Below, piece by piece: positions 7,318-64,000 of a DNA stretch of 64,000 nt. Positions within the stretch are counted from its first letter, which is position 1, and the number at the start of each line of letters is the position of its first letter. Position numbers and translations under genes: made by a program. The notes under the pieces were generated by a model. The model made no database searches. It was not told the DNA's origin and was given only the letters and a program-made list of their open reading frames with translations. Source of the stretch: Girardia tigrina (Eukaryota); NCBI GenBank assembly GCA_001938485.1, contig MQRK01255124.1, positions 1-64,000 of the forward strand. Direction: 5' to 3'.

Positions 7318-8374
7318 TACGTGTTCTACAGGCACGGAAACAAAATTTCGCACATTTCATCATTTTTCCAAATGAATCCTGTTGAGTACCGCAGTGTGAT
7401 TAAATTTCTTGTGCTACAAAGGGCAGACAGCCAGGAAATTATCACGCAGTTAACTGATGTTTATGGGATACATTTTCCCTCTAAAACGACTGTTTATGAT
7501 TGGATTGCCCAGTTTAAAAGTGGAAGAACAACTGCTTTAGATGAAGAGAGACGAGGACGACCAGGACGATGAAATCATCGAAACAGAGAGAAAAATCACT
7601 GCAAAGGCGCTTGGAGCTAGCATGAACATCAGTGAAGGGAAAGCACATGAGATATTGAAATCCCTTGGAATAAGGAAGCTGGCATCTCGTTTTGTACCAC
7701 GATTTCTGTGGGGAGAGATGTGCGAGGAACGTTTGCAGTGTTCTCAACAAAACCTGAATTTGTGGCATGCACATGAATAACTATATCTATCAAACATTGT
7801 CACTGTAGATGAGCAACCTCTATGTACCCGAGAGCAAAAGAGAATCTTCAGAATGGCGCCTTCAAAATGAAAAACCAGCACTAAAATTGAGGCCCAGGAC
7901 AATCCATCGGCGATGTCTTATGCTGACTGTATTTTTGGACGGTGATGGTGTCATGAAACTGGATTTTGCAGAAAAAACAGTGAAACTGAATAGCGCCTAC
8001 TATATCTCATTTGTTGCTGAGACTAGATCATTGCGTAGGAAACCTAGAGACTCACCACTGTGGTTGTTGCAAGACTATACACCAATTCGCAAAAGTGCCC
8101 TTTCCATAGCGGCTATTGATGATGCAGGTCTCAACCTCGTCCATCATCCTCAATACAGTCCTGACCTAACGCCAAGTGATTTTTGGGTATTCCGACGCCT
8201 GAAGAAGGCGATTCGTGGCAAAAACTTTAAATTCCATGAAGAAGTGAGAGGTGCAATTATGAATTTCTTTGCGGAATGTGACTCAAATTTCTTCAAAGAT
8301 GCCTTTTCGGAATAAGTGGTACGCTGGAAGAAGTGCGTAGCCAATAATGGTTCTTACATTGAGAAGTAAACGTT

Positions 8375-22600: not shown

Positions 22601-25600
22601 ACAAGTGTAGGCCGTGGTAAAATGATGCCTTCAATGCACTTTAATTGACCCGTCACTGGTAAAGTGGGAAAAGGGCGAGCTTGGCGTCAAAGAAACATGG
22701 CAGCGACTTGCCATAGATGTGACACATACATCTGAGAGAAAATATATGACGCTGGTCGATTGTGAGCCGCGGAGGTACTCGGTTTGGAGGAAGATTCCTT
22801 CAGAATGTGACAATGATTTATATGCAGCTCTGAAAGTGGTGTTCAATGAGTTTGGTCCTCCACCAGAGCCTTTACTTAATAACTTCACAACGGACCGCGG
22901 AACAGCAATCCGGAAACTACTGTCGGAAATGGGAGTCGAGATGCAGTTTCGGTGCGCAAATCGGCCCAGCAGAAGTGGAATTGTTGAACGCTGTCATCGA
23001 ACCATCAAACGCATGCTGGCACGGAGTGGTAAGCCAATCAATGACATGGTAGCGTGGTACAACGCCACTCGGAATGCGGTGGGCGTGATTTCGGCGTCCA
23101 TAGTGTTTGCACAATGGCGACGACTGCCGCTACCGATCAATTTCACTGACGAGCTAGCAAGGGACAGCGGAGTTTGACAGATGAAGGAACTACGAGTAGA
23201 AGACACCGTGTTCGTAAAACCGGCGAATGTAACTTGCACGACTCAGTGGAAACGAGCAGTTGTGAGCGGATTGGCCAAACCCCATCAAATTGAGATCAAC
23301 GGGATTCCATTCCACGTGTCACATGTCAGACGCGTACCGATCCGAAAGCAACCACAAGGGTGACGAACGCAGACAACTGCAATGACAGCTCTGATGGTGA
23401 AGACGAGCAGCCGTGGGACAGAGTGACAGATGACTCCGAAGGTATCAAGTCACAGACCGACGAGGTGAGTTAGTCTTTCAATCAATCGCCTTTAAATGTT
23501 AGCATATAAATTTACTAATATTAAATCAATTTTTTTAATAATTTCTTTCTTTTGATCCATAATATATTTAATATTTAGTTCATTAATCTATTAATCTTTA
23601 TATGATATATAAGAGTTTTATTTTTCAGTACTAAAATAACATGATATCCTCATTTTCTTCAACAGCCGCATTAAAAAGTTAGAAGAGCCGCAGTTTGGCC
23701 AAGTCTGATCTATTGTTTAGTAGCTGACATAGAAATAAAAATATTTTTAATGTGTTCGAATTTGCATTTAATTTTTAGATTTTGATTAAAATACATGTCA
23801 ATACATTTTTTTGTTAACTCATCTACTAGTTATTGCCAAAGAATGAATATGAAAATTAATTCTGTTTTTTGATGACTAATGCATTTACGTCTATGTCAGG
23901 GATGTCCAACCTTTTAATTTAATGGGCCGCATTGCAAACTTAAATATTTCACTCGGCCACAAAATTACCAGAATAAGTTAAGCCTAGCAAGGAAATGATC
24001 TCAAATTTTGGAGATTTTCTGGGGGAGAGGAGGTTCTTTGTTTCTGAATGTTGCAACCTTTTTTTTCCATGGCCGCGAAGCTCATAGGTCATAAAAAACA
24101 TTTAATTTAATTAACCAATATTTATTCAATCAGACTTTTGACTTTGTCTTCCAGCCATAATGTTTTCAATATTTGCATCGAAGGATGCATTCTTAATTCT
24201 AAGAATGTTTGCTTTAGGTATGTCAGTCAACCTATTTCTATCTGCAGTTTTAATGTTTTTCATGCTTGAAAAAAAACTGCTCACAAGAGTATGTTATTCC
24301 CCACATGCATAATAATTTTCTGGATAAATTTAGAATTTGATTGAATTAGGTTTTGAGGGAATACAATTTCTTATAAAATAAAGGAAGTGTGTTCTCCCTA
24401 TGGAAAGTTTTTAAACCTTCCTGACTTTGCAGCTCAATCAGTTCAAATTGTTACTCCACTGGTGCTTTATCATATTCAAATGAAAATGGATCATTAAACA
24501 ATTTTAACTCATTTTCAATCTTTCTAAAGTCTGAAAATCTAATTGTAAACTCTCCAAGCAAATCTTCACATAATTTAGTATATTTTTCATAGTTTAAAGA
24601 AAACTTTTTCTCTCTTTCAGATGGACTACGAAAGTATACAATTTTCCCGCTTTTAGATGTGCTATAAAAATATTCAATTTCCTTGTGAAACTAATTATCC
24701 ACTCAAACATTGAGGAACATAACTGGTCCTTTCCTTGTAAATGTAAATTAAGTTAAGCTAATACTTCGGTGATGTCTACAAAGAAAGGTAAACCATTCAA
24801 CCATTCTTCATTTTCTAAAAAATCCACATTTTGCTTCTTTTCTTCCAAGAACACTATTATTTCAGGTAACAATAACTGAAATTTTTTAAGGTTGCTGCTT
24901 TACTGAGCAATCTAACTTTTAAGAAATATACTACGTCTTCATATTCACTGCCAACCTCGTCCAAAAATGCTTTAAATTCGCGTTGATTGAAACCCAGTGA
25001 TCTGATGAAATTAACAGTCTTGACAGGATCAATCATCAAATGTTTTATATTTAGCTTTTGAGCACATAATTGTTGTTGATCAATCAAGCAATGGTAACTG
25101 AGAATCTCTTGATCAACAGACTCTTTGAATAAAGTAATAAAGCCATTGTGTTTACCAGTAAGTGCGGGTAATTGAATAAATGTTTTTCCTATCAATATTG
25201 AATTTATCTAATGACATATTAACAAACTCATATATGTCCTTGCCTGTTGTTGTGCCTTTCATATGACACAAGTGCAACATTTCTTGAATGATATTGAAAT
25301 TTATATCAATTCCTCCAATGAAAATAACTAATTGTGCAGTATCAATTTGGTCAGTACTTTCATCCAACGCTAAACTGTGAAGAACGCATGCAGATAATTT
25401 GTCCTGCAGTGTGCGTTCAATATTATCACCCAAGTCATCGATTCTTCTAGCGATTGTATGATGTGATTGATCATGTTTCCTTTACTAAATTCACCTTGTA
25501 TGGACAGTACTCATTAAAAGCAATAACAATGCATTCCTTTATTAATTCTCCATCCTTTCTTAGCTAATTTCTCAGCTTTAAGGTAACTTACTTTTGTATA

Positions 25601-31600: not shown

Positions 31601-34600
31601 GTTTCATAGTTTCCAACCTAATACTTATTTTATCGTAGTCTATCATGTTTGAAAGTAATGTAGTTTCCAAAAATGATGTCAACATATGCAGGCAGTCTTT
31701 CAATCAAAATAGTTTCAACATAGCTGCACCTTAAAAGACTATCTACGTGACTAGTATAAACCGTTAACAGGTTCTTGGTTTAAACCTCGAAGATTCATGA
31801 ATTCATTTTGCAACTACTGGTACGGGTTGTATTGCTACTAATGTCGATCATCACCTTCATCATCTCCCCATCGATTAACACTTGTTGGATTAAAAAATTC
31901 TAAACCACTACAGTACATGAATAAAAAATTGACGATATAGAATTGTAGAAGTGAATCATAATTTTCGGTGTTAGTATTGTTAATAATTTGCCAATGGGTC
32001 ATTCGTCCTTCAATAGATGCAAGGTTGAGTCAAGTTTCTCTTTCCGATGTTGTTTTTTATCGCTTTGCTATTGAATTTGAAATAATCGACTGAACTGAGG
32101 ACTGAGAGCAAAAAATATTACTAACTTTAAATGTCTATAACTGGAACATAAATTCACAAATTACAAAAAACTAATCAAGTGGGCTGTTGTTTGAATAAAT
32201 CAAAATAAAATTCGCTTTAGTCTTCATTTTTGAATTTCATTTCTCATGAATATGTCGTCAGAAACATGAAGTCGTGAATTAATTATTCATTTATTTCAAG
32301 AAAATCCACAATCAAGTCAGAAAAAAAATGCCACAAAGGCAAATGTTTGTTCGAAAACAGTTTCTAACGTTATTAAAAACTTCAATGAGAACTTGAACGT
32401 TTTTAGAAAAATTGGTTCGGGAAGAAGAAAGGGCTTTTCGTGTACACAGAATGGGAAGAAAGTAAAGGTTATGTTAGAGAGAAATCCTAGTCTATCAAAT
32501 GAAAACTTGCGGTAAAGGCGAATTGTAGCGAGAAAACAGTTAGGAAAATTAAACAATTTGGGGGTTTAAAAATGTATAAAGTTCAAACAGTAACAGACCA
32601 GAACGCTAACAAGAACGTAAAGGCATAGCAGCGAGTCAGAAAGTTTAAATCTGGTTTTCTTGCGAAGAAAAAATGTTGCATTATGGATGACGAGACTTAT
32701 GTGCTCTTCGAGTTTTCCCAGCTACCCGGACAAGCATTTTACTCTGCAACTAAGAGAGAAGGAGTTGAAGAAAAAATTAGAAGCAAGAAAAAATCTAAGT
32801 TTCCCAAAAAATTTCTTGTTTGGCAGGCTATAATGTGGATGTGGGAAAAGGAATAAATGCTTTGTCACATATTGCACAATAAACACAGAACTCTTTATGA
32901 AGGAGTGCTTGCAAAAGCGTTTATTACCATTCATAATTCAACACAGAGGTCTTACTTTCTTTTGCCCGGATTTGGTATCGTGCCACTATGGCAAGGCAGC
33001 CAAGAAGTGGTACAAAGATAATAACGTCGATTTGGGGCAAAGAGAGGCAAACCCACCAAATTATCCAGAGCATCACCAAATCGAAAGATATTGGGCCCTG
33101 GTAAAAAGGCAATTAAAGACGACAAACAAGAGGGCACAGACAATTGCAGATTTTTGGAACAAGTGCAGCTAAATGCAGCTAAAAACGTGACAGAAACTAC
33201 AATTGCAAGTCTAATGGCAGGCATTCCGGAAAAGCTCGCAGAATTTATTAAAAAAAATAAATAATCATTCTTAGCTTACTAAAATTATTTTGAATTAAAC
33301 ACATTTTTCAAAACAGTAGGTATTTTTTCAATCAAAAATATGGTTTTGAAGATAGAGGATTTTCAAGTTATTAATATTTTTCGCACTAAGTCCTTACATC
33401 TGAATCATTTATATTTACACATTTCGGAATGCTAAAGCTAGTGGTTTAAGACTCCTCGAAGGTTTCTGCAAGTCTTCGTAACAACTTCATTATTATACTG
33501 TCGAGGCCAGATCTTTTTGGCAAAGTATCTCTAACTTTAGAGGAGGGATTTTTAGTTCAATCTTGGTTGGATTTGTTTTAATTTCCTCCTTAAACTGTGA
33601 AGGTAGTCAATGGCCGTAGTTAGGTACGCCGGATCTCGTTCGATCTCCGAAGTTGAGTAACCAACGGCCGCGTTAGTACTTATATGGGTGACCGATAGGG
33701 AAATCGCGGGGCCATTGACTATAGGTCAGGTTAGACTAGATGTCTGCTATAGGTACCATGTAGACCTGTAATACATGTCCCATGGTCGAATGGTTGGCGA
33801 CTAAACCAGCTCCCTCATCCAGAGCAACCTGGATGAAGAGGCTGTGTCGACATCTAGCAGGATGAAAAACAAAACCTAGCAAAGGGCGGATGAGCTCCTT
33901 GGAGCCAACGACCATCCATACATGAAGAGTAGATAGGCGCCACCAAGTTCCTTGCTTACTGAGACACTCAAAAATATGCAAAACCAAACCATAATGCTTG
34001 TGCATAATTGAGTGCACTCACGGCCCCATTGTTAACGTACCAAAAAATCTGGGAATAAATGATTTTACATTAAATGCATCGATTTAATATTTGATATAAG
34101 TCATAGTCTCGATTGACTATTTGATTTTGGCTATCAAAACAAACAATCTGTCAACAAAGAGTTGATATAGCCGAAGCAATGTAACTATTTGCCTTTACTG
34201 AACTCTCGATGTAATTTTCTTAGTATTTTTTGTCGATTCAATGACAAATGTTTTTCTGAAAATCGCATTCGAAGTTTTTTAATAATTAGAATTAGAATTG
34301 CAAAATCATGGGTACCGAGGTCATAACTGTTCTGTCAAATGTAGTGTAGCGAAACGAACCAGAGCTTTGAAAATTCATAGATCTTTTCCAGTAGCCACGC
34401 GGAACTACCATATCACGATCTGTATCTGATTAAAAGGTTTTACACGATACGTACGTTATGGGCCAAAACCATTCGAATCAGTGCTGCTATGCAAAAATCT
34501 GCAAGGTCAGCGGAGGTCGATTGGAGAGACAAAATTGTCATTTCAAAACATGGATTAGTGAACATTCATAACCGAGAGGATCGATTAAGGTGCTATGCAA

Positions 34601-35596: not shown

Positions 35597-38269
35597 CAAT
35601 ATTTATATTTATATACATATAAAGGATCTTAAATATTATTATGACATTCTCCTGAATTATTGATAAAATGTTGTTCCCAGACAACAGTGGCGTAGCAACT
35701 GTTATTGGCGCCCGGGTCGGTCCTAAGATTGACCGCCCCCATAACTTTAACCCTAAACCCTAACCCTAACCATAAGCCCTAACTTTAACCCATTATTCGG
35801 AACCCTCAATTAGTGTCTTCGTTAAAAATTAAATAGAGTTATGTTATTGCTGGTCTCAAAATCTTTACTTTAATTTCATATTTTTCTTACGATACTCTTA
35901 TTCTTATACTAAGAATTATCAAGTAACGAAGTCATTTCAAAATTTTCAATTTTATTTACAATTTACAAGCGAAATTCTCATACTTCCATTTTCTACAAAT
36001 TTATTGATAACAGTATCAAAATTCATTTCAGTAGCAAGCTTTCTCTCAATGGAAAGGACTGCCAAGTCTGTAAGCCTTGATTGACTCATTGTAGCTTTAG
36101 TTTTGAAAACTAGCATTCGCAGCTGGTAACGCTAGTAGCCCGGGTAATAAAGATGCCCAGCAAGATCGCAATATTAAGGACGAATTCCCAAGGTTATCTC
36201 TCTGTATGAAGCTCAAAAGTTCTAAAGGGTCTGTTGATTCTGTAGTTTTCTGAAACTCGGACAAAATACTACATTCTTCTTCTTTCGGCTTACAATTCCT
36301 TTTTCTCCACCTCGTCTTCTAATGTTCTAAGCTGGCAATAGTAATTATAATCAAAGAGATTCGATAGTGCAATGAGAGTATATTTGTTTGCATGATCATA
36401 AACTTGTTGAAATGTTGAATATATTTCCTCAATTAACCTATCTACGACAGACAGCATTTCCTGTCTCAACCCAACATCAAATGTCATCGCTACATCGACG
36501 CTCCATGCTTATCCACATTTCAAAGAAGAGCTTCTAAGATTCGACCATTGCAATGCCCACCATCCTTTCTCTATTCTTAAAAATGTAATCTCTCAGTGCT
36601 GAGCTTGACAGAATTTTGATGCAGACCAAGCAATTTTGTTTAAAGACACTTCTTGGCATCATTGATCTCTGGTAGAACATAATTCTAAAGGCTCAGAAGC
36701 GACAGAAACGGAAATGACAGTACTGATGATAGAAGAAAAGAGGCATCTGATCTTGTCGTCACATTCTCTCCTTCTTTGGTGAACTTCACCAGAGCAGTCA
36801 CGACAAGTGATAATTTGTTCAAGAGAATATTTATAGCATTTGATCGAGTGCTCCATCTAGTTTCCACAAGCCGCTTAATATTTAGACCAGTCTCATGACT
36901 CAAAACATCCCAGCGATGCGTATATGCGGAAATGAAAGAGAACAACCGGTCCAATATGCCAAAGCATGTAACAGAGTGAACCACAACAGAAGCTGCATGT
37001 ATGCAAGTCAAATTCTGGGTGTGATTTGAGCATGGCACAAATACAACTTTCATGTTTATTTTGGAGATGTGCTTCTGGACGCCCGATCGATGGGCAGCCA
37101 TAACAGTAGGCCATGGCAATCATCAATCTGAATCTCGTCCTTTTCTAGTTGTCTGAATATCAGTTCACAAATTTCCGTTGCGCTTTTTCACTTTGTCTCG
37201 ATAAAGCGGACAAACGACTCCTCCACTTTCACTTCATTTTCATCCATGTTTACGAAGCTTAAGATCTCGTTGAATTGGTCGTTGTACGATATAGCTGTCT
37301 AAAATTATTCAAAAATACTTGCTCTTCTTGACTTGTGCGATGATTTTCTGTCTCACCTGCTGTGTTAATATGACTAGAAACTCATTTTGAACCTCTAGTA
37401 ACAAATATGAATTGATGATATATTTTCCCAGCTTAATTTTTATCAAATTTTCACGTAGCACAGGGTCATACTTAGCAAACAAATGAACCAATTCCCAATT
37501 TTTTATTCTATTTTCCTGATTTCCGTCGTCGTGAATGTCTTCCCGGTGGCCCCTTAGTCCCAGTAATCTAGCCAGACTTTCTCGCAATTTCTTAGTTTCT
37601 TTCTCAATTAATTCTTCCTCTACTTTTTTTATTGCCTTTCTTTCAGCGAGCCGGATCTCTACCTTTTTCCACTAGAGGCAGCAGCAGTATTGATTTAAAA
37701 TGTTGTATTAGTAATATAAACTTCATCTAAAAAGAATTTGTGCATCTCTGGCAAGAGACAAATCTTCAAGCCCATTGGCAGTTTTCACTAAATTCAGTGT
37801 CATTGTAACATTCTGTTATGGCCAGCATTTCTGATTAGATTTTTCTTCATTTTTTTATATATATAATATTATTTCCATTCCCAAATATCACCCCCAACAA
37901 TAATGCCACCCGGGGCGGACTGCCCCCCGCCCCCCTTCTTGGTTTGTCAACAATGAAATACCACTACTCTGATTGTTTCTTTACTTACTCAGTAATGCAG
38001 CACAGTTGACTTTGGTCAATTTGTTGTGGAGAAAAGGGAGCGATCTTCGGATGCTCTCGAGATGTTCTGAGGACAGTGTCAGGTGGGGAGTTTGACTGGG
38101 GCGGTACATCTGTCAAATGGTAACGCAGGTGTCCCAAGGTGAGCTCAACCAGGACAGAAACCTGGTGTAGACAAAAAGGGGAAAGCTCACTTGATTTTGA
38201 TTTTCAGTACGAATACAGACCGTGAAAGCGCGGTCTATCGATCCTTTTGAGTTTATCTTCAGAGTTTGA

Positions 38270-38302
<33 letters not shown>

Positions 38303-41300
38303 CAGGGATGTCTGTGCGGCCAGTGGGCATACTTCTACGTAGTATCCCTGAGAAACTAGAAGAAGGGTTTGATTCCGTCTCTAGGCTAAAGTGCCCGAAA
38401 GCTAGCCTTTCATTGCGGAAACAGCCGGCAATGTATCGTATTCAGGAATGGGCCAGGCGGAACTAAAGCATGCTCGACCCCAACATTGGGTTAGTGCTTG
38501 TTGAGAACCATCAGAGTCCCAGGCCTCCTATAAAGCCTCAGGCTTAATACTCGACAGGAGTTGAGGTGCACCACAGGGATGGGATACAATGTCGCTCGCC
38601 TCCCCGTGGTGTATCCTGGGAACTAGAAAGAGGGTCTCTCCCCTTTCTAGAAATAGAAGGGGGGGTCTCCTTGATCTTGCTAAATGAGTAGACGGATCGA
38701 TAGTGCCAGCAACTCTGTCTTTCGCTAAGACGCCGCTAACAAAACCCAAAACAGGGGTCTGGAAGGACCCGAAGTCATTAAGCTCCCGAGAGGGGGATCC
38801 CTCGTTAAGGATTCCACTATCAGTGGATTGAAGATTGGAACATGGAATGTTCGAGGATTGACCGACGAGAAGATACTAAACATCTCATGTATCTTTGAGA
38901 AATTAAAACTGGATTTGTGCATACTCACAGAGACGCACTGGCTTGGAAACGACATTACCTCATTCGGGGAATGGAGGATTCATCACAGTGGCAGTACGAG
39001 TGGCACTCGTGAAAGAGGCGTAGCCGTAATGATTCGATCGAGAGATTCCAAAGATGTGGAATTTGAAGCAGTAAGCGAGAGAGTTTTTCTCTGTCATATA
39101 CCCCACAGAAAGATCACATTAGTGGGTGTATACGTTCCAACTGACAGTGGATACTCGAGTGAAGAGAAGGAAGAGTTCTTTATTACACTACAAGAACAAA
39201 TTGAGAAGGCAACGGCTGAAGCAGAGAAGAGACGATTCGAGCTAGTAATTGGAGGTGACTTCAATTGCCGGCTCAGCCGGACGGACGAGAATGAGAAGAC
39301 GGTAGGGTGCTACACTAGTTCAAAGGTTACATCAGAGAATGGAGAACTTCTTATAGATCTCGCAGAGGCGTGCAACTTAAGGATAGAGAACACGTTCTAT
39401 AAACACAAGTTGACGCAAAGAACTAGCTGGACGCACCCTGCCACAAAGCAGAGACTACTATTGGACCTATTTCTGGTGCAGAAAAGCAGATGCAACAGGA
39501 TTAGGAATGTCAAAAGTTATCCTAACTTTGACTGCGGTTCAGATCATGACTTAGTCGTGTTAACAATACTTGTCAATAATAATAAGCAACTCAAATTGAC
39601 AAACGACAGAAGGAAGAAAAGCAAAGGAAAGGTGGACAGATTCTCTCTGCAGAATAACAAAGAGGCTATCAGCGCGGAGATTGGACGGGAATGTCCAAAG
39701 ATCGAGAGCTGGGACGATCTGGAAAAGACGGTCACAAGTACCATGGAGAAGTACCGTAAGAAGAAAGTCCTACTCAATCAAAGGTGGCTACATGAGCACC
39801 TAGAGGAGCTGAAGCCTCTACTGCAGGAGAAATGGAAACGCAGAAGAGAATATATGCAGAATAGGTGTGAAAGAACCTACTCAATATGGAAGGCTGCAAG
39901 ATTAACAACCTTGCGGATTCTCAGAAAATGGAAAAGAGAGAGGATAGAGACTATAGGCCAAGAGATAGAAGGGATTCTTAACAGAGAATGTCTCGGAAAG
40001 ACTTCTGAGCTATACACGGAACTCAGAATCTTGTGTAACAGTCAAACAAAGGAATCCTCTCTCTGTTCAGTGGAGAGTAGTATCAAAGACGAAGTGTTGG
40101 CAGAACACTTTTCACGCCTATTCAAGAAGAATGAAGGAGACTATGTCTTGGAACTGGATCAAAGTCAACAATTGGATATCAACTATTTACCGGACGTGGA
40201 AGAAGTGGGTGCCGCAATAACACAACTCAAAAACGGCACGGCTGCTGGAAACAATGGTATCATTCCAGAGCTATACAAGTGGGGAGGCCACCAGCTAACG
40301 ATCAAGATTATGCAATGTTTCGAGGCCATCTGGGAGGGAAGAGCAGAATTCCCGGAAGCATGGAAAACGGCGAAAGTCGTTATCCTTTACAAAGAGAAAG
40401 GGTCTAAAAAAGACTTGAATAATTACAGAGGAATATTCCTACTTGATGTAGGCGGAAAGATAATGGCTCGAATCATCGCAAACCGACTGATACCACATCT
40501 TGAAAGGATACTGGATGATTGGCAATTCGGCTTCAGGCCGAAAAGAAGTACTGGACAAGCGATAGGTATCATAAAGAAGATACAAGAAGAGGCAAGATAC
40601 CGAAGCAAAAGCGTATATGCAATATTCATCGACCTTGAGAAGGCTTTCGATAGTGTTCCCAGGAAAGTTCTCTGGGACTGCCTTCAAGGAATTGGGGTAC
40701 AAGGACATATGCTGAACGTCATCATGAAATTCCACGAAAACTTCACGGGTAGTATAGGAAAAGAAGTATTCCAGATGGACAAGGGAGTGCGACAAGGTTG
40801 TGTATTAGGACCCCTGCTATTCAACCTTGTCTTCGACTGTGCGATCAAAATATCAGTCAAGGATGGTCTATCAGGTGGAGTACAGGTGATTCACAATGGA
40901 GAAGTACTACTCGTGAATCGATTGGCGTACGCAGATGACTTGTGCCTGCTGGACGAAGATTATGGGAATATTGAGAAAAATATGACATGTCTAAACACTG
41001 CGTTTAAGAAGATGGGGCTCAAAGTAAACATTGGGAAAACGAAGATACTTAACCTCAATGGAGCCAGATATATCACGGCACGAGACGAGCTGAACGCCGG
41101 GATCGAATGGGTGGATGAATTCTGCTACCTGGGCTCCATAATTGAGAGCGGAGGGAGCTCAGGTGTAGATATCAAAAGCAGAATCAAGAAAGGAGTAATC
41201 AAACTAAGAACGATTAGACCAGTGTTGAAGAACAACAAGTTGTCCCTCTGAAACAAGCGCAACATCATCTCCAGCTGTGTATTCCCTGTGGTCTACTACA

Positions 41301-44300
41301 GCTGCGAGAACTGGAGGACAAACGAAGATCATGTCAAGAAGCTAAAAGCATTCCACAACTTGTGCACGCGGCGGACTCTGGGAGTTTCAAAAACTGAACG
41401 AATAAGAATGGATGAATTATCTATTGGGCTGCAAAGTCCGATGGATATTCTAGCACGAAGAAGATTGAATCACAACATCAAAATCGAACTCGGAGATTGC
41501 CCGGAGAACGTCAAACAAGTTTACGAATGTGAACTTATCGGAGGGAAAAAGGTAAGTGGGAGACGCAAACAACATTTGGCTGAATGCCTAAGAGTGGACG
41601 CTAATTGGCTCTTCGGTGACAATTACAGTGTCGGAGAGTTTAAAAGGGATATTCAGCAGGAGAACTTGTCTACAACGGATGCGAAGATGGCGAAAATCTA
41701 CAGAATCAAAAGAATCAACAGAAATGGAGACGAGAAAACACTAAGATTAGTGTTGCCCCGTCTGAAAGAGCACAGCTGCCCGATGGATGCCTGTTACAAG
41801 CAGTATGCAGAGGTGAAGGAGCTAAACAGGCATCTCAGAAGGGATCATGAAGGAGCCGAACCCATCCCGAGGAAACAAAGAGAGAAGAAAGCCCAGCCAC
41901 GACAGAAGAAAGGAATCTACAATTGCCCGCAGTGCCCCAAAGAATACAAAACTGCAGGATTCCTCAAAATCCACATTCAAAAGAATCACAAAGAAGAATC
42001 AGAACAATCCAACGCCCAGCAAGGAGATAATTTGGTCATCGAGAGAGAGGAAGAGCCGACAACAATCCAAACCAACCTTCAATTACCAGACGCAACTGAG
42101 AACACGCCGAGGATTTCTGGGACAGAAGACAACTCTACATATCACCGTGAAGAATCGCCGCACCGACAATACCGATTGCCAGCCAACTATGCAAAAGCAA
42201 AAGGACATTTTCAGTGCCCATTCCGAGGATTTTACGCGTCCACCGTAACCGCCAAAGGTATGTATGGCCATGGCACCAAATTCCATGGCTGGTCTTTAGC
42301 AACTGGAAAACCGATCGTTCGCAGGCAGAAGGACACTGACCCCGTAGGAGGCCTATCGGGGGGCCCTTAAGGACTTTAGTTTGGGTGGACCCTCTAAAGA
42401 GCCTTAGGCTCAATACCATTGAAAGAGATGGGAGGCCCACCACAGGGATCAGGGATCGCTGTGCGGCCAGTTGGCATACTTCTACGTAGTATCCCTGAGA
42501 AACTAGATTTGGTTCGATTCTGTCTCTAGGCTAAAGTGCCCGAAGCTAGCCTTTCATTGCGGAAACAGCCGGCAATGTATCGTATTAGGAATGGGCCAGC
42601 AATCCATTCACTAGGCTACGCTTTTCAATCTGGGTGTGAAGGCAGTGGGGAGTAGTGACCCTGCTGTCGATGGTTGGATTGCATCTTCATGATCTAGGAT
42701 GAATCAATCCCGGTGAAGGGTGTCGTAATGACGTCGTTGCATCTTCGGACTGGCGGAACAAAGGCATGGATCCTAACATTGGGGGAGTGCCCGTTGAAAA
42801 CCATCAGCGTCCCAGGCCTCCTATAAAGCCTCAGGCTTAATACTCGAAAGGAGTTGAGGTGCACCACAGGGATCGGGGATCGACTGTGCGGCCAGATGGG
42901 CTTACTTCTTCGTAGTATCCCCGAGAAACTAGAGTGGGTTCGACTCCTGAATCTAGGCTTAAGTACCCGAAAGACGTATACGTAAGTCGTCTGTAAGATG
43001 ACTTACTTGGCCCGATCGATCGAAGGACACACTAACACTGTGTTGCTCTAATTTAACTCGGTAGTCAGCAAAGGAGTAGAACATTAGTTTCGAGATCCGG
43101 AGCATGACATGTGAGCTTCACTGATATACTCTTCCTGATGAAGTGCAACCTTGAAATGTTTTTTGTTGCACATGATTCGGGTCGTGTTCAGACGGCTAGA
43201 AACGATTTTTTTACACTCTCCTGTGCCAACTGGTTGGGGTTTCTAGTTTGTCAAGGGTATACATTGCACTAGCCAGAAGAAACTAGTACTTGCACGAAGT
43301 GTCCCCGGATAGTGAATTGTTGCATTGTGACAATGGATTGATTTTTTTTCGATCTGTGAAAATCTCGATCAGCCAATGTGAGCATATTGAAATGATTTGT
43401 TTTGCCCGCATTAGCGATTTTTTTTGGTTGAGATCTTTACTGGTCTGATCTATTGAAGCGGTGTGATGGTTCATGAACTAAACTAGGAACGTTATGCGGT
43501 CTGTACCCTCGGATGGTCTGAATTACTCAATGGCAGTAGGTAGTAGCATTTGATATTTATATGGTACTAAATAATTAGTACTAGCTACTACCGGCATTTT
43601 AACTGAGTCACTGTTAAAGAGTAAGGAGGTAAGTTCAAGGTGTCGGTAATCTTATCCTTCCTATTGAAATGTTCTTATTTGGGAGTGGACTGATTGCAAG
43701 CTTTGCAGACCTGGCGTGGAAAGTTGCAGACCTGATCTACTAAATTCGTTAGACCTTGCACAATATCCTGATCAATCACGCTTTTTCTAGATATTGTAAT
43801 CAGTGCCACATAATTGTCACAAAAAAATTAAAAAAAAAGCGGACTTGATAAACAAAAAATAACAAAACATTTCAAATATCATTTATCAAATCACATCTTG
43901 TCGTAACGAATTACATGTCACGTATAATGCATTCAATAACAAAAAACATTTCAAATGAACACAATATACGCGAGTACTCCCCATTTGCCGGTTATTACCA
44001 ACAATTGAGCATAGGCACCCTATATTTTTAAATATTTTTTTAGTGTCGAACTTTTTTTTAATTTAAAACAAAAATTCAATTTTGAAAAATATTTATTTAT
44101 TTTTATTGATTTTTTAATTAAATTTAATGTATTTTTTACTTTTGTAATTGTTAAAAGAATTTTTTTGAAAAAAATGTGACTTTAGTAATTTAAAATAAAT
44201 TTATTAAAATATTTTGATTAAAAATTTGGGCTGGGGTGCTAGGGTGAATGCAGTTGGTTACACAGAGGTGCTACGCACGGTTGTTAAGTAGTTATTTATA

Positions 44301-44579
44301 AGTTGTTATTGTAACGTCATCACTGAGCAATCTGGGGGTCCCGTGAAGCATGGCAAAAATGACTTCGATGACTCTATCCGCGGGCGGTGAGAGAGTTGTT
44401 GGGGACATTACTCGAGTCATAGGGCTTAGCCTGTGGAGTACATTAGTACAAGGGTTGGTCTCAGCACGGAGAATAGTTCCAACTAGTCATTATATATGGC
44501 GCATGGGACAATATTAAAACTCCGGATTCACCACAAGGATAACTGGCTTGTGGCGGCCAGGCGTTCATAGCGACTTGCT

Positions 44580-44622
<43 letters not shown>

Positions 44623-44657
44623 GAATTCACAAAGAGTTGGATTGTTCACCCACCAAT

Positions 44658-44699
<42 letters not shown>

Positions 44700-47600
44700 A
44701 TTTACCGTACTATATAATATACTTTCTACTACTATAATAATATACTTTCACAATTGTACAAAGTGCAATGTATTCATGTTTTAATATAATATAGTGTAAA
44801 GTGAGGCAGAACATACATATGGTATAGCCTAAGCAAAGGGCGAAGCAAGAAAAATATCGAAAATCTGCCTGAACACATGTATAGTAACCCATAGGTAAAT
44901 AGTCGGAATATGATCTTAGATTCTCGAAAAAATCAATAAATAGTGCTTTATTAATATGTTGTGTATAATAGCTGTATAATAGTTGTATAATAGCCTAGGC
45001 ACAGGTCGAAGCAGACGCTTGTGGCCACCAAGCGTTCATAGCGACTTGCTTTTTTGATCCTTCAAGTTCGGCTCTTTCTATCATTGTGAAGTAGAATTCA
45101 CAAAGCGTTGTATTGTTCACCCACCAATAGGGAACGTGAGCTGGGTTTTGACCGTCGTGAGACAGGTTAGTTTTACCATACCATATAAACCGTCATTACA
45201 ATAGTAATTCTGTTAAGTACGAGAGGAACCACAGATTCGGATCACTGGTAAATGTGACCTCAAAAAATGTTGTAACCTCATGCTGTCGCAGACGAGTAAT
45301 TATGTTTGTCGTTGATTACATTCAGATGCGCATCCGTTAGAAATGCAACGTCCTGTTTATCCTGGTTGAACCGTCTTGGCATTGTCTACAAACGATGCCG
45401 ACGTCGGAACAAACAGGATGCCCCTGGATTCACAATAACAATTATGGAACTTTATGGAATTTGTAAGTTCAATTAATTAATTAAAATTTTTAATTAAGGT
45501 TTTTTGTTTTTAGCTTTACTCGAACGGATTTGAAGCAGTGGGACCGGAATCCTGACCCAGCTCATCATCGTGACATGACGGGCTGTGGGCCCCCGCCTAG
45601 ATCAATGTCGATCTGGGTTGATTTTATGTTGTGTAAGCACATATTCTTCTCCAGTGAATGCATCGCTCATGTCTACATGAAATGTGTCGACTGTGAACTT
45701 GTGGCACTGTCGTGTCTGCTTGGTCTAAATTCATGAAAACCATCATTATTATATATGATAAATTAATAATTCTAATAAATTAATAATGAGATGGAAGTGG
45801 AGAAAAGGAAAATTTTAATTATTTTAGATAATGCACCATCCCATCCGAATATCCAACTTTCGGCAATAGAGTTTTTATATTTGCCAAAGAACACAACTTC
45901 CATAACACAGCCATTGGAAATGGATTTGATAAAGGCATTCAAGGATCATTACAAGAATTCTTTTGTTGATTTTTTGGCAACTGAAGAAGATGATTTAAAT
46001 AATGATCCATTTAAAAACATTAATATTAAAAACGCTATTGTTTTTACTTTTATTGCCTGGGAGTTAATATCCAAAGAGTCGATTATTAATTGTTTCAAAA
46101 AGGAATTTTCCAAAAAAGAAGAAACCAACCAAAATTCATATGCTTGAGGAAAATATAGAGGACGTTATTGTTGAGGTTTATGAAAAAAAATTTATCAGAA
46201 CTACTGGAGAAGGAGACCGGAAAAGCTGAAATTTGTGAAAAAGTTCGTTATGATAAACTAAAGCTGGGATGGGAAAAACTTAAAGAATTGGAAAATGTTA
46301 TTGAATATACACCTTTTGATGTTCAAAAAGAATATATCAAGTTTAGAATGCAATTTAATACGCCACTGTCAGATATCTGGGTAGTGGGATGATTGATTAA
46401 TATTCAATATTATTATAATATATATTAAGAACATTAATTGGGTTTTCTTTACATTTATTTATATCACAATTTGAATTATCACTAGAACAATTCTCCGTAA
46501 AACTTGTGTAGCTCGTCATAGTTCTTGATTGATAATCTTTAATAATATTCTTTAACGTCTTATTATTAAAACAAATTTAAGTTACAATTTAATTATTAGA
46601 AAAATAATTTATATTTTAAATTTAAAATAATTTTTATTTATTTTAAGAAATTATTATTAAAATATTATTTATGAAATATTAGTTTAATTTTAAAGTGATT
46701 ATTTAACTTTGAAGAATTGATTAAACAACCCGACGTTTTAAAATATCAATCTTCCATCTGGGTGGGAGAAACACAATCCTAAAACAACATACCAAACAAC
46801 ACACAATAAACACCATTCAAAAATATTCCTCACAATATATATTCAATATTAATTGTTGCTCACAAAATACAGATAATTGTAAGTACATTGTATTTTTAAA
46901 TTTTTTTATAATGTAGCTTTGCTTTTTAGAATCCGCATGAAGTATTCAAAAACTCATCTCCTAAAAGGAAAGAGGCAATGGGTGGAAATGGTGGCAATCC
47001 AAGGAATGCAATTGATACTGTGCTTTCAGATATGAATCTGAGCACCGAAATTCTTCCACACATGCCAAAGAAAAAAAAGAACTTTAACAGAGTAAATTTA
47101 CTAATTAACAGGAACTCCAACATCCAACACAACCACATCCGTGTTTCCAATAACAAAGAAGTATTAAGTATCAATTCATGATTCTGGAGAGGATGATCAA
47201 GACAGAATATTGGCAATAGGCGAGAGAGAATTTCTGGCGGAGCTGGACAAACACTCAATATTTGGGGACGCCATCTTTGACAAAACACTCAATATGCTCT
47301 ATCAGTATGTATTGCATTGATTTCCTTCTTCTGAGAAAAAAATCAAGGGACATATAGAATAATGCTTATTATATTGAAAGACCTTCTTCCAAACTTCTTT
47401 CCTCATAAATTCCTCATTAACTTTGAGAAAGCTCAGGAAGAATTTCCAACAGTTCAAGTGAAAGGATGTGACTTCCACACTTGCCAAAGCTTTGTTAGGA
47501 ATTCTGGATCAGTTGGAATGAAAACTGAGTTTGATTCTGATCATGATGTCAAAGTTAGAATCAAATCAGTAACTGCTGTTACATTTGTTCCACCAAATGA

Positions 47601-59125: not shown

Positions 59126-59525
59126 TACATTTGGTATATAATATGTGTAAATATATATTAATATATAATATATGTTTGGTTTACTCGATACAGACGCTGA
59201 ATGTCAAGCATACAAACAAACTGTTCATGATTTGTGTGTTTTTACTGGGTGTAAGTAATTGAGTTATTACTTTCATCAGTTATTACTGGAGTTAAGGAAC
59301 ACTTTAAAGAAGAAAATACAGAAGAATGCAAACATTAAAATACCATATTTTGAAGGATTAAGAGCTTTTAAGAAGAGTATTTGTAAAATGATAAGTAGTG
59401 CCAAAGTAATCTCTGTCACATCCAAAGTTGAAAGTTTCCTCTAAAAAAAACAGTTTGTGGATTGCAAGCTAATCTGGTATATAAATTTAATTGTCACGGG
59501 TATCGAAATTTGTACGTTGAAGAGT

Positions 59526-60974
59526 TCTACTGAATGACTCATTTGTAGATTTAGGACTTAAGATCAATATAAATAAGACCAAAGTTATGAACCTAAACGG
59601 AGATACCAAAGTTCTCACCACCGGACACCAGCTTGAGACTGGTATTGAGTGGGTATTCAAATTCGTCTATTGGGGTTCCACAATCTCCTCAAATGGTACC
59701 GCTGAAGATGAGATAAGAGAAAGAATTCAAAAGGGTACCAGGAAGATCAGGGACCTCAAACCGGTTTTGAGGAGCTCCAAACTCTCTTTACGGAACAAGA
59801 AGAAGATTGTCAGCTCTTGCATACTTTCCGTAGTATACTACAGTTGTGAGAGTTGGCGAACAGGTAACAAAACAATCAAGAAGCTGGCTGCCTTTCATAA
59901 TTTGTGTACTCGCACAATCATGAAAGTGCAGAAGACTGAGAGGATACAGATGGACACTATCGACATTGGACTCCCGCTCCCCACGAATATCATTGCAAGC
60001 AGAAGACTTGCCTATCACAGCAGGTTGGACACCTCTGATACACCAAATATTATGAGGTGTGTGTGGAGAGCAACAATGCCAATGGGAAAGAAGATCAGTG
60101 GGAGAAAGAATCAAGCTCTCTCCGAATGCCTCAGAGTGGATATACAGTGGCTCTTTGGGGATAGTGCAAAGTATGAAGACTTCATACACCACATTGTCAC
60201 AGAGACCCCACAATAGATAGAAGGCAATACATCAACTTCTTAATAAGAGAAGGGAAGCAGAACAGAACAAGAGCCGATCTACCGAAAGTACTCAATGAGA
60301 GAGATAAACTCCTTCAATGTACGATAGAAGATTGCTTTAAGAAGTTTGCCGAACAAAAGGAGCTAAATAGACATCTCAAGCGGTATCACACGGAATCCAC
60401 AGTAAGCATCCCGCTTCAGCTCCCAGAAGATGAAAAACCGTTTAAATGTACCAAATGCAGCAAAGGTTACAAAACGAAAGGATGGTTCACTAGGCATCTG
60501 CGTAAAGATCATCGAATAGAAGCGAGGGAGAATATCAATGAACATCTGACAGAATAATCAGTGCAATCCAACAGAAGAAGCGACAATCCAGACAGAGACG
60601 AAGAACCCACACTTATCCAAACGACAAATTTTCAGCAACAGTTACCCCGACTATTTCAACGGTGGTGGAGCAAACGACTTATCCCGAAGATACACATTTG
60701 TCTTTTAGGATCGCAGATCCAAATGCGAGGGGAAATTTCAAATGTCCCTTTCGCGGCTGTACCAAGTCCACCAATACAGCCAAAGAGATGCTCAATCATG
60801 GTACCACAATTCATGATTGGTCGTTTGCAACAGGGAAGCCAAAGAAATTTCGGAGACTGAAGCACTCCGTCAACGTAGGAGGTCTATCGAGGGGCAGCTA
60901 GCTCTCTTAAGTTTGGGTGGACCCTCTAAAGAGCCTAGTGGCTCAATACCATTCGAAAGAGATGGGAGGCTCAC
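59526..60974 (+). mobile_element. 5'-truncated relative of the unit-2 LINE
   Basis: LGLKININKTK...VVYYSCESWRT...LSECLRVD, zinc fingers and the same 3'UTR; flanked by acgttgaagagt at 59514-59525 and 60973-60984. Confidence 0.9.
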
Positions 60975-60984
60975 GTTGAAGAGT

Positions 60985-61095
60985 GGAATATAACGCTGCT
61001 CGCCTCCCCGTGGTGTATCCTGGGAACTTGGGAGAGGGGTTCTTTCCTTTCTAGAAATAAATTGGGGAGGTTTTCTTGATCTAGGCTAAATGAGT
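60985..61095 (+). ncRNA. Degenerating HDV-like ribozyme
   Basis: ggaatat...gctcgcctccccgtggtgtatcctggg...gCtaaatgagt; one P1 mismatch. Confidence 0.75.
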
Positions 61096-63500
61096 AAGGT
61101 AGCGGATTAACGGTGCTAGCATCTCTGTCTTTCGCTAGTCCAAAGCTATGAAAACTCAAACTAGGGGTCTGACAGGACCCGAAGTCATTAAGCTCCCGAG
61201 AGGGGAATCCCTTGTTAATGATTCCACTTGCAGTGGACTGAGGATTGGAACATGGCACGTAAGAGACTTAACCGACGAAAAGATACTGAACATGATATGT
61301 ATTTTGACAAACTTAAAGTTGATATGTGCATCCTGACCGAGATGCACAGGATTGAAACGATATTGCCTCCATAGTGGAATGGAGAATCCATCATAGTGGC
61401 AGTACAAGTGGGACACGTGAGAGAGGTGCTGCCCTGATGGTACGATCAGTTGATTCGAAGGGAGTGGAATTTGAAGCTGTCAGCAAAAGACTATTCCTGT
61501 GCCATATACCCAAAAGGTTACAATCATTTGTAGGGGTATATGCACCAACGTACAGTGGATATTCAAGTGAGCAGAAAGAGGAGTTCTTCGTATCGTTACA
61601 AGAAAAAGTGGAGAAGGTGACTGTTGAAGCTGAGCGCAGAAAATACGAATTGGAGGCGACTTCAACTGCAGACTTAATCGGACGGAAGAGACCAGAGGAA
61701 GTATCCGGGTGGTACACTAGTTCATCAGCAAGATCATAGAATGGTGATCATGTTATTGATCTCACAGAGGAATGTAATTTGCAAGTAGAGAACACCTTCT
61801 ACAGGCATAAACTAGCGCAGAGAACTAGTTGGACACACGCAGTAACGAAGCAGCGCTTATTACTGGACCTGTTTTTAACACAAAAGAGCCGCTGCAGCAG
61901 GATATTAAATGTCAAGAGTTATCCAAATTTTGACTGTGGATCGGATCACGACTTAGTCTTATTAACCTTCTGAGTTAAAAATGATGGCAAGAAAAGCCTC
62001 AAGCTTGCTAATGATCGAAGAAAGAAGTGCAAAGGAAAGTTTGACAGATTCTCTTTGATGAACAACAAAGACACAATCAGTAGAAACATTGGACAGGTTT
62101 GTCCGAATGTTGAGAGTTGGGACGAATTAGAAAGAGTAGTTGTTTTTACAGCTAGCAAATACCGAAAGAAGAAAATCCCGCTTAATCAAGCTGGATTCAC
62201 AACCACCTAGATGAACTAAAGACGTTGTTACAGGAGAAATGGAAACGAAGGAAGGAGTTCATCCAGAATAGATGCGAACAAACGTATGCCAAATGGAAAG
62301 CTGCGCGACTGAATACATTATAGCAGCTGAGAAGATGGACGAGAGAAAGGATATAGATCATCGGACCTGAGATTGAAGGCGTGCTGAACAGAGAGGGCAT
62401 AGGGAAAACCTCTGAACTATATACGGAACTCAGAGCCCTATGCAATAGCGAAACAAAAGAATCAATCCTCTACACAGTACAGAGTAGTTTGGCAGACGAA
62501 GTGTTAGCAGAGCACTTCTCGAATCTATTCAGGAAGAGTGAAAGAGACTATGTCGTGATTGCAGATCAGAGACATATCTTGAATATTGACAACTTACCGG
62601 ATGTGGAAGAAGTGGGTTCCACAATAAATCAACTCAAGAACGGTACAACTGCTAAGAACAATGGTATCATCCCAGAGTTATACAAGTGGGCGGTCAACAG
62701 TTAACTCTCAAGATCCAGCAATTTTTTTAACTAATTCGGGAGGGAAGAGCAGACTTCCCGGAGGCATGGAAAACAGCGAAATTTGTAATCCTATATAAAG
62801 GGAAAGGTTCAAAGAAGGATTTGAACAATTACAGAGGAATCTTTCTACTCGATGTAGAAAGTAAGATAATGATGCGAATCATTGCAAACAGATTAATGCA
62901 ACACCTTGAGAGAATATTGGATGACTGGCAATTTTGGTTCAGGCCCAAAAGAAGAACAGCACATGCGATTGGCATCATTAGAAAGGTGCAAGACCAGGCC
63001 AGATACCTCAATATCAACGTGTGTACAATATTTATCGACATTGAAAAGCTATTCGCCAGGAATTGGAGTACAGGGTCGCATATTAAGCATGATAATGGAT
63101 TTTCATGAAGGATTTACAGGAAGTGTTGGTAAGAGCATTTTCACAATGGAGAAAGAAGTCCGACAAGGTTGCGTACTCGGTCCCCTACTATTCAACCTAG
63201 TATTCGACTGCGCAATCAAAACTGCCATCCAAGAAGGACTAAGTGGAGACGTGAAGGTCAAATGGGAAGACGGAGAAATACTAACTGTAAACAGGCTGGC
63301 ATATGCTGACGAACTATGTTTACTGGACGAGGATTACGAAAACATAGAGAAAAACCTAACGTACCTAAATACTGTGTTTCTTAGAATGGGGTTGAAGATC
63401 AACAGTGGGAAGACGAAGATCCTTAATCTCAATGGGGCCAGATATGTAACGTCGGAAACAAACTGAGTACCGGTGTAGAATGAGTGGAGGAGTTTAGTAA
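60985..63500 (+). mobile_element. Decayed 5'-complete copy of the same LINE family, 3' part missing
   Basis: Ribozyme, APE (GTWHVR, GSDHDLV) and RT ([25 protein letters not shown]) with many frameshifts. Confidence 0.92.
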
Positions 63501-64000
63501 TTCAACATACCTCTAAAAATATATAATTATTTTTATAAAATCTGTGTATTACTGTATTGGGTAAACTACCATGTCGATTTATGTGAGCTTAAATGGTGAA
63601 TGACTCACGTAGCGTTTAGAAGTGATGAATTATCTACCGTCCTGTCGAAAATCTACCGACAAGTATGTCTTGAGAAAATTATAGTGGTGTTAGAAATTAA
63701 TCAATTTAATCAATTAAATAAAGTCGATATATTTTAAAAGAGAAATAATCAGTAAAAGTTTTTAAAATTAGAATTTAAAAATAAATAATAAACGAAATAA
63801 AATTTATAATGTAAATTTATAATAAAAAGCTACTGCAAAATTATTTTTAAAGAAATTAAATTAGGTTAAATAGTTTTACAAAAAATAATTGGAAAGAAAT
63901 TTGAATTTGTATAAATTGAATAAATTTTATAAATAAATTTATGTAATAAAAAGTTTCATTAAATAAAATTTTCAAAAAAATGTTATAGAATATAATAAAT

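Follow-up and report, generated by a model that had tools for sequence, protein, structure and literature searches.

A candidate HDV-like ribozyme with a C-G pair at its predicted cleavage site at the 5' end of a 28S-inserted, non-autonomous retrotransposon of Girardia tigrina

Introduction

Must a self-cleaving ribozyme of the hepatitis delta virus (HDV) family begin its released RNA with a G, or can a natural lineage cut before a C? The question is raised by a locus of the flatworm Girardia tigrina, which lies in a stretch of 64,000 nucleotides (nt) that we call the window (NCBI GenBank assembly GCA_001938485.1, contig MQRK01255124.1, positions 1 to 64,000 of the forward strand). A fragment of 28S rRNA sequence in this window is interrupted by four retrotransposon insertions, namely one autonomous-type element, B, and three short elements, A1, A2 and A3. 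Each A element opens with a unit that resembles an HDV ribozyme and has C as its first base. A sequence-only reading of the window had proposed that these units are a natural variant of the family that cuts before C.

HDV-like ribozymes at the 5' ends of retroelements are established for R2, R4, RTE, L1Tc and Baggins elements (PMC3774820 and references therein). We compared the A units with one another, with the ribozyme of B and its relatives, and with published HDV-family ribozymes. We consider it probable, from these comparisons, that A, a partner of the APE and reverse transcriptase element B, uses the three units for 5' processing, and that they have a B-derived fold and a cut before C.

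Results

Three A-type units have the layout of an HDV double pseudoknot

The A-type sample consists throughout of three copies. Unit 2, which belongs to B, is described further below.

38303 to 38396, + strand: unit 1, HDV-like fold, first P1 pair C-G, predicted catalytic C38386
42450 to 42541, + strand: unit 3, HDV-like fold, first P1 pair C-G, predicted catalytic C42531, P2 with one mismatch
42874 to 42968, + strand: unit 4, a diverged third copy, P1 pair 2 compensated to G-C, P2 with two mismatches, J4/2 altered

The coordinates and segment order given by the sequence-only reading held, and units 3 and 4 line up with unit 1 in one register. All three units follow the double-pseudoknot order P1-P2-P3-L3-P3'-P1'-P1.1-P4-J4/2-P2', with only four of the six P2 pairs in unit 4. 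The segments of unit 1 are as follows.

38303-38309 with 38344-38350, + strand: P1, seven Watson-Crick pairs, the first C-G
38310-38324, + strand: J1/2, 15 nt
38325-38330 with 38391-38396, + strand: P2
38331-38333 with 38341-38343, + strand: P3
38334-38340, + strand: L3, tctacgt
C38335-G38352 and U38336-A38351, + strand: P1.1
38353-38355, + strand: J1.1/4, aaa
38356-38384, + strand: P4, with a ctaga/tctag base
38385-38390, + strand: J4/2, gctaaa, containing C38386

Standard pairs fill 95.7% of the 69 pair cells of the three units, and this share falls to 14-55% when the partners are slid by 1-3 columns. A C at the catalytic position, a first P1 pair of C-G and a P1.1 made of C-G and U-A were all part of the earlier proposal, and we see them in each unit. 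The U..CG of L3, of which the U and the C-G make up the reverse wobble and the metal site in the family, is kept as tctacgt in units 1 and 3 and as tcttcgt in unit 4; the B type has tccccgt. In units 1 and 3, J4/2 reads gCUAAA, which is identical to the B type, and unit 4 has gCUUAA, with one position changed. The interior of P4 differs in all three units and its 5-bp base is constant, as had also been noted.

Alternative registers do not restore the G at +1. By sequence reading, the A units have no register with G at +1 that retains a 7-bp P1 and a 2-bp P1.1. We rejected a 5-bp gggat/atccc P1 and a 6-bp P1 starting at the second base, both of which place G at +1 and leave P1.1 unpaired or with a single wobble.

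We then wrote a descriptor from the published rules of the family, left the +1 pair free, and ran it over both strands of the window, a check that the sequence-only reading had suggested. It consisted of a 7-bp P1, a 3-bp P3, an L3 of 7-8 nt with the pattern U....G., a 2-bp P1.1, a 4-bp P4 base, a J4/2 of C-N-A-A and a P2 of at least 5 bp. Units 1 and 3 were its only matches, and both begin exactly at the junction of 28S and element. The same descriptor gave a mean of 0.067 full matches per window (maximum 1) in 30 dinucleotide-preserving shuffles. By itself, the relaxed descriptor is only modestly specific in this AT-rich DNA.

The A and B elements follow one another at a single 28S position

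The elements and the 28S sequence around them form one block.

37771 to 38302, + strand: eukaryotic 28S rRNA fragment of about 530 bp, not a whole gene, covering about 2412-2827 of the Rfam large-subunit rRNA model; ends at the insertion site
38303 to 38571, + strand: element A1, short, non-coding and non-autonomous, with a 5' ribozyme-like module and a B-like 3' tail
38572 to 38580, + strand: 9-nt 28S target repeat cacagggat, the A1/B spacer; target-site duplication
38581 to 42440, + strand: element B, a non-LTR retrotransposon (LTR, long terminal repeat) of autonomous type that encodes an APE endonuclease, a reverse transcriptase and, at the C-terminus, C2H2 zinc fingers
42441 to 42449, + strand: 9-nt 28S target repeat, the B/A2 spacer
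42450 to 42864, + strand: element A2, as A1, plus an extra internal segment of about 150 nt
42865 to 42873, + strand: 9-nt 28S target repeat, the A2/A3 spacer
From 42874, + strand: element A3, whose opening module, of the 92-95 nt class, is unit 4
44528 to 44712, + strand: 28S resumption, target repeat and downstream 28S, to about 2997 of the Rfam model; closes the insertion block

The 28S fragment ends with ...ccacagggat at 38302, where the Rfam consensus goes on with AACUG in the Rfam alignment. A repeat search placed the ten bases ccacagggat at 38293, 38571, 42440 and 42864, and these divide the block into A1, B, A2 and A3. At 44528 the same ten bases return with one substitution and are followed by aacugg. 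Each of the four insertions thus stands after the same 9-10 nt of 28S. Because the 3' end of B, ...gaggccca(c), is fixed by its relatives, cacagggat is a 9-bp target-site duplication. The block is a series of insertions into one regenerated 28S target.

A1 and A2 have an identity of 96-100% in the first 140 nt and of 91% in the last 110 nt, and differ in the internal segment of about 150 nt. Units 1, 3 and 4 are the opening 92-95 nt of A1, A2 and A3, respectively. The three elements differ by substitutions and the roughly 150-nt indel, yet share the exact start base after the target repeat. This common 5' start suggests separate full-length insertions of RNAs with a defined 5' end.

Two further observations concern the A elements. 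The 44 nt right after the ribozyme module (38399-38442 and 42543-42586) are 100% identical between A1 and A2, hold an imperfect hairpin (cattgcgg ... ccggcaatg) and are better conserved than P4 of the ribozyme. The similarity of unit 4 to A1 and A2 stops near 42975. It is followed by about 1.5 kb (42976-44527) that is unrelated to A1 and A2, is very AT-rich at 43800-44230, and has no visible A- or B-type 3' tail ahead of the last target repeat. It may be that A3 belongs to another non-autonomous family or that this copy was rearranged.

Element B carries a ribozyme with G.U at its first pair

The coding region and the ribozyme of B are as follows.

38828 to 42370, + strand: B open reading frame, with one in-frame stop and no frameshift
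38581 to 38696, + strand: unit 2, the 5' HDV-like ribozyme of B, with G.U at +1, P1.1 CC/GG, and a P4 base damaged in this copy

In a single reading frame, B encodes an Exo_endo_phos domain (APE-type) N-terminal to RVT_1. Its best named protein match is CFDP2, which we take to be RTE/BovB-derived, and B can tentatively be called RTE-like on this protein likeness. An assignment to the R2 clade is ruled out by the APE-type Exo_endo_phos domain, which stands in place of the restriction-like endonuclease of that clade. An identity with the planarian element R5 is tentatively disfavoured, since R5 has been grouped with R2-type restriction-like-endonuclease elements (PMC3636483) and B has APE.

Relatives of B with 93%, 82% and 55% protein identity were found in metagenome assemblies, and they sit outside 28S. 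Seven European Nucleotide Archive metagenome contigs (L002-L008, first 60-135 nt) carry close relatives at several non-rDNA (ribosomal DNA) sites. L005, L007 and L008 have one flank in common, but the few bases between flank and element differ, so that the 5' junction varies. L002 has a 3' flank similar to this common 5' flank, which suggests that B relatives may form tandem arrays.

Unit 2 looks canonical, with a P1 of gggatac/gtatcct, G.U at the cut site, L3 tccccgt and a split P2. It was the sole match to the Rfam HDV models in the region, at 32.9 bits for RF00094 and 23.2 bits for RF02682, both below the gathering scores of 50 and 44. The first bases of two relatives also matched below threshold (L001, 32.5 and 28.6 bits; L002, 30.5 and 26.2 bits), so the B type as a whole ranges over 30.5-32.9 bits for RF00094 and 23.2-28.6 bits for RF02682. 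These sub-threshold matches always begin at the first base of the B-type element. Neither the distant relatives L040-L042 (27-28% protein identity) nor L009 (P0003, 55%, 5' end truncated) gave a match to an Rfam ribozyme.

The B-type ribozyme is 98.8% paired in the full double pseudoknot, in seven distinct sequences from different insertion sites. Its second P1 pair is either G-C or A-U. Five of the seven have G.U as their first pair, one has A-U and one has a mismatch. Among the relatives, the two opening bases of P1 are gg, ga, ag or cg, with accompanying changes in P1'.

The ATG with which the reading frame of L001, the closest relative, begins (340-370 of L001) is absent from the B copy of the window (38760-38830) and from L002 (360-470), and the L002 gene call starts at a downstream ATG. 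The absence of this ATG may bear on reports that HDV-like ribozymes aid translation initiation of such elements. A second, more diverged B-type pair lies head to tail at 59500-64000, at a site that is not 28S. There a B-like 3' tail ends near 60974 and is followed, after a spacer of about 10 nt, by a new element with a B-type HDV-like ribozyme (60985-61100, one mismatch in P1); a reverse transcriptase fragment is encoded at 62906-63466.

A model of the B type recovers the A units

We built a covariance model from B-type sequences only and ran it over the whole window. It matched B at 142.9 bits and the sequence at 60985-61100 at 93.8 bits. Unit 1 scored 25.0 bits (E 2e-4) and unit 4 scored 18.6 bits (E 6e-3), both window-wide, and with the filters off unit 3 scored 13.7 bits over a background of at most 8 bits. 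The A units are the best non-self matches of this model. Since a model made only of B-type sequences recovers them, the A core is a diverged relative of the B ribozyme. The model aligned P1 onto tgggcat, which we discarded as a gap-avoiding artefact, because this alignment consumes a P2 strand and leaves no P2.

Two pairs that are C-G in B are U-A in A, namely the third pair of P3 and one of the P1.1 pairs. The U..CG of L3, the gctaaa of J4/2 and the P4 base are constant between the two types. These compensations in P3 and P1.1 are better evidence for the fold than the covariation among A copies on which the sequence-only reading had relied. That covariation is real, but it is confined to one pair, P1 pair 2, where units 1 and 3 have A-U and unit 4 has G-C, and 180 of 500 column shuffles gave a result as good as this. 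The stronger evidence comes from unit 2, which that reading had left out. Its proposal of a natural HDV variant stands to the extent that the A units are genuine HDV-like derivatives, and the origin of their C is taken up below.

The two elements also resemble each other at the other end. A and B can be aligned over roughly their last 60 nt, and these have in common a hairpin-within-stem in which seven pairs are kept after changes on both sides. We infer that a B-type protein mobilises A.

The C at +1 is best explained by the 28S target

The first 7 nt of A (cagggat) are identical to the 7 nt of 28S that precede them, so the junction holds a tandem 7-nt duplication.

38296 to 38302, + strand: alternative P1 5' strand for unit 1, cagggat, the last 7 nt of the 28S fragment

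P1' (atccctg) pairs equally well with either copy of the 7-mer, and the descriptor reports both for units 1 and 3. With two equal P1 strands, these units have two candidate cut sites, one at the junction and one 7 nt upstream in 28S, and both precede a C. Unit 4 is different. Its internal copy is cggggat and its P1' is atccccg, and the 28S copy would give an A.C mismatch. A cut in unit 4, if any, is predicted at the junction only.

The sequence-only reading had taken the element boundary at the C as support for the cut site. The fold does start exactly at the element's 5' end, yet the tandem 28S copy makes this argument ambiguous. Compared with the P1' of B (gtatcct), that of A (atccctg) looks like a 2-nt register shift deeper into the 28S flank. 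We find the +1 C best explained as inherited from the 28S target and not as an independent innovation of the active site.

Surroundings of the block

The rRNA pieces of the window are scattered and do not form a unit. There is a lone 5.8S at 3970-4111 (- strand) and a 5S at 33606-33720 (+ strand), and three partial 28S fragments lie at 37771-38302, 44528-44712 and 45017 to about 45400; two of the three correspond to one and the same part of 28S. The region that bears the rRNA looks like degenerate or orphan rDNA mixed with transposons.

Elsewhere in the window, an intronless and uninterrupted eEF1A reading frame of 463 amino acids (1282-2673, + strand) is 94% identical to that of Humbertium sp., a land planarian, and 81% identical to that of Schmidtea, a likeness that points to a triclad flatworm, most likely a land planarian, as the host lineage. 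Two decayed mobile elements were also seen, a mariner/DDE transposase fragment at 7809-8315 and an integrase-core fragment at 22719-23177, the latter within a GC-rich island at 20-24 kb.

Discussion

The A units are built like, and descended from, members of the HDV family. We do not file them as established members, because they lack the G1 feature and their cleavage is a prediction. In the mechanism that we propose, read-through transcription would span the element, starting from 28S or from an upstream element in a tandem array. The 5' module would then fold, the cytosine of J4/2 would act as general acid, and the RNA would be cut at the first base of P1. Cleavage would leave an element RNA with a defined 5' end, and its 3' tail would be used in target-primed reverse transcription at the 28S site. 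The A ribozyme has probably arisen from the B type, with its P1' re-tuned to the 7 nt that end the 28S target. The 5' end of A itself would now be a tandem copy of this 28S 7-mer, and this would fix C-G in place of G.U at the cleavage site.

Relation to known ribozymes and elements

The A units share the nested double pseudoknot, the U..CG of L3, a J4/2 of C followed by A's, and a cut at the first P1 base with the HDV genomic and antigenomic ribozymes and CPEB3 (RF00094). They differ from these in the C-G pair that replaces the G1.U wobble, in their long J1/2, and in having no Rfam match. The U-A pair of P1.1, which the sequence-only reading had counted as non-canonical, is already documented. 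Fast HDV-family ribozymes of C. briggsae and Ackermannviridae have U:A in P1.1 instead of two G-C pairs, as the A units do (PMC13635239). However, the second P1.1 pair described there is non-Watson-Crick, and that of the A units is C-G. The RTE-clade ribozyme drz-Agam-2 of Anopheles (Ruminski et al. 2011, as cited in PMC3774820; PMC4908430) is similar in its sizeable J1/2, which may be structured. In contrast to that system, the ribozyme here matches only RF00094 and RF02682 and no drz-Agam model of Rfam, and B has C-terminal C2H2 fingers.

The closest parallels in the use of the target are the R2 ribozymes (PMC3774820). They too open a 28S-specific non-LTR element at its 5' end and would free it from a co-transcript, and their P1 is made of 28S. 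R2 junctions can carry tandem 28S duplications of leader length, which provide an internal second P1, and a substitution with its compensation can move cutting to the internal copy (Figure 8 model of PMC3774820). Unit 4, with a compensated substitution that favours the internal copy, fits this pattern. The differences are that the element here is APE-type and uses another 28S site, that the recruited stretch is 7 nt long and abuts the junction, whereas in R2 it lies 9-36 nt upstream, that the recruited P1 starts with C, and that the carrier is a non-autonomous partner. Short non-coding elements with the 5' ribozyme of a long interspersed element (LINE) and a similar 3' tail are also known, as R2 SIDEs (PMC3414825) and as NARTc beside L1Tc (PMC3185411, PMC5814959). 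A differs from these in that a simple internal deletion in B would not yield it. The ribozyme and the tail of A have diverged with compensations, and its P1 has been re-targeted.

Does the A-type RNA cut before C?

Several points weigh against a cut before C. G1 has been described as the one invariant base of the substrate, with an essential G.U pair (PMC8495972), and the descriptor of a design study fixes G1-Y, along with C-R-R-A after the catalytic C (PMC6326823). The A units have C at +1, paired with G, where the family has G with a pyrimidine. In CPEB3, activity is nearly abolished by G1A, and G1 changes usually lower activity (PMC8233481); in fast-folding HDV constructs, such changes are tolerated (PMC8233481, citing Cerrone-Szakal 2008). 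The U at -1 could pair with the A of P1.1 and lengthen P1 in the A units, and a P1 extension of this kind is reported to reduce cleavage in L1Tc and R2 (PMC3185411). In unit 1, the 5' strand of P2, tgggcat (38324-38330), can pair with P1' (38344-38350) with one mismatch and two wobbles, a possible competing fold. The Rfam HDV families gave no match to the A units in a gathering scan or in two E-value scans with a limit of 10, the second of them confined to 131 nt, as the sequence-only reading had thought possible for standard descriptors. Pseudoknot-free folding of the A units recovers P1 and P4 with ordinary energies (z -0.2 to -0.7), and such minimum-free-energy z-scores carry no information on a pseudoknotted fold. 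One P2 mismatch is present in unit 3 and two are present in unit 4, where J4/2 also has an A-to-U change, and the A copies have only the one compensated pair among themselves. Pattern scans for more A copies gave 0 and 30 matches in metagenomes, all 30 due to chance on inspection, and 0 matches in viral and prokaryote-genome collections. Finally, the 28S sequence around the copies amounts to a fragment of just 530 bp, and B has a stop codon and a damaged P4 base.

Much of this would also be expected if the A module were a fossil of the B type, inactive or barely active since the C-G pair crippled its catalysis. Its 5' ends would then be set otherwise, by annealing of the 28S-like 7-mer at the target, by an internal start site or by host nucleases. 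The published weight on G1 and its pair, the strong effect of G1 changes in CPEB3, the silence of Rfam, the damage to P2 and J4/2 in units 3 and 4, and the position of the copies in fragmentary rDNA beside a stop-bearing B all agree with such a history. However, P1' has been remodelled so that it forms seven perfect pairs immediately next to P3', and in unit 4 it was compensated once more. The changes in P1.1 and P3 relative to B are compensated too, and units 1 and 3 keep the U..CG of L3, the C at the catalytic position and the A's that follow it. This pattern of kept and compensated positions implies that the fold was still under selection once the C-G pair had arisen. The exact 5' end common to three distinct insertions also counts against a dead module, and we regard it as unlikely. 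The ribozyme could instead be active and cut only at the upstream cagggat inside 28S, 7 nt before the junction, so that the boundary is not the cut site; the 28S leader would anneal to the target and hold the junction to a uniform two-copy form, which is the case in many R2 lineages. In units 1 and 3, P1' does pair equally well with the upstream 7-mer and with the internal one, the two-copy junction is common to all three A copies, and uniform junctions with leader-length tandem 28S duplications are the signature of upstream cleavage in R2 (PMC3774820). But the changed P1' of unit 4 matches the internal copy and leaves an A.C mismatch with the 28S copy, and J1/2 would grow to 22 nt. This arrangement seems to us less likely still, and since +1 would again be C, it leaves the main point unaffected. 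That a repeat merely happens to fit a permissive HDV-like descriptor is highly improbable. Two of the 30 shuffled windows did contain one match, the three copies are related and count as one event, and the folding z-scores are ordinary. Against chance stand the start of the matches exactly at the 28S/element junction, the Rfam-detectable HDV-like ribozyme at the equivalent position of the neighbouring element B, the recovery of A units by the B-only model at E 2e-4 and 6e-3 window-wide, and the compensated differences in P1, P3 and P1.1.

On balance, we favour 5' processing modules with a B-derived fold. That the A RNA truly cuts before C we judge from these sequence comparisons to be slightly more probable than the opposite. 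The present copies are probably relics of once-active elements, and should their RNA not cut, we would be looking at an ordinary accumulation of decayed elements that target rDNA.

Significance

A natural lineage with C-G at the cleavage site, and an rRNA target recruited into P1 outside R2, both appear to be new. A cut before C would relax the sole sequence requirement that the HDV family places on the substrate strand, and motif searches with a fixed G at +1 would then under-count the family. Taken further, the locus may reveal an HDV-type ribozyme that is efficient with a C-G cleavage pair, with G1 dispensable in vivo, reached through an APE-type pair of a LINE and a short interspersed element (SINE) in a flatworm that convergently recruited its rRNA target into P1, as a second case beside R2. 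This broader proposal is tentative, and we hold it with somewhat less than even confidence. The compensated series from B (G.U, CC/GG) to A (C-G, CU/AG) would offer a study of how a double pseudoknot drifts while it stays folded. Ideas that have so far been specific to R2, namely that the rRNA target can serve as substrate helix and that junction duplications can move the cut site, would then apply in a flatworm to an APE-type element that is unrelated to R2, and to the non-autonomous partner of this element.

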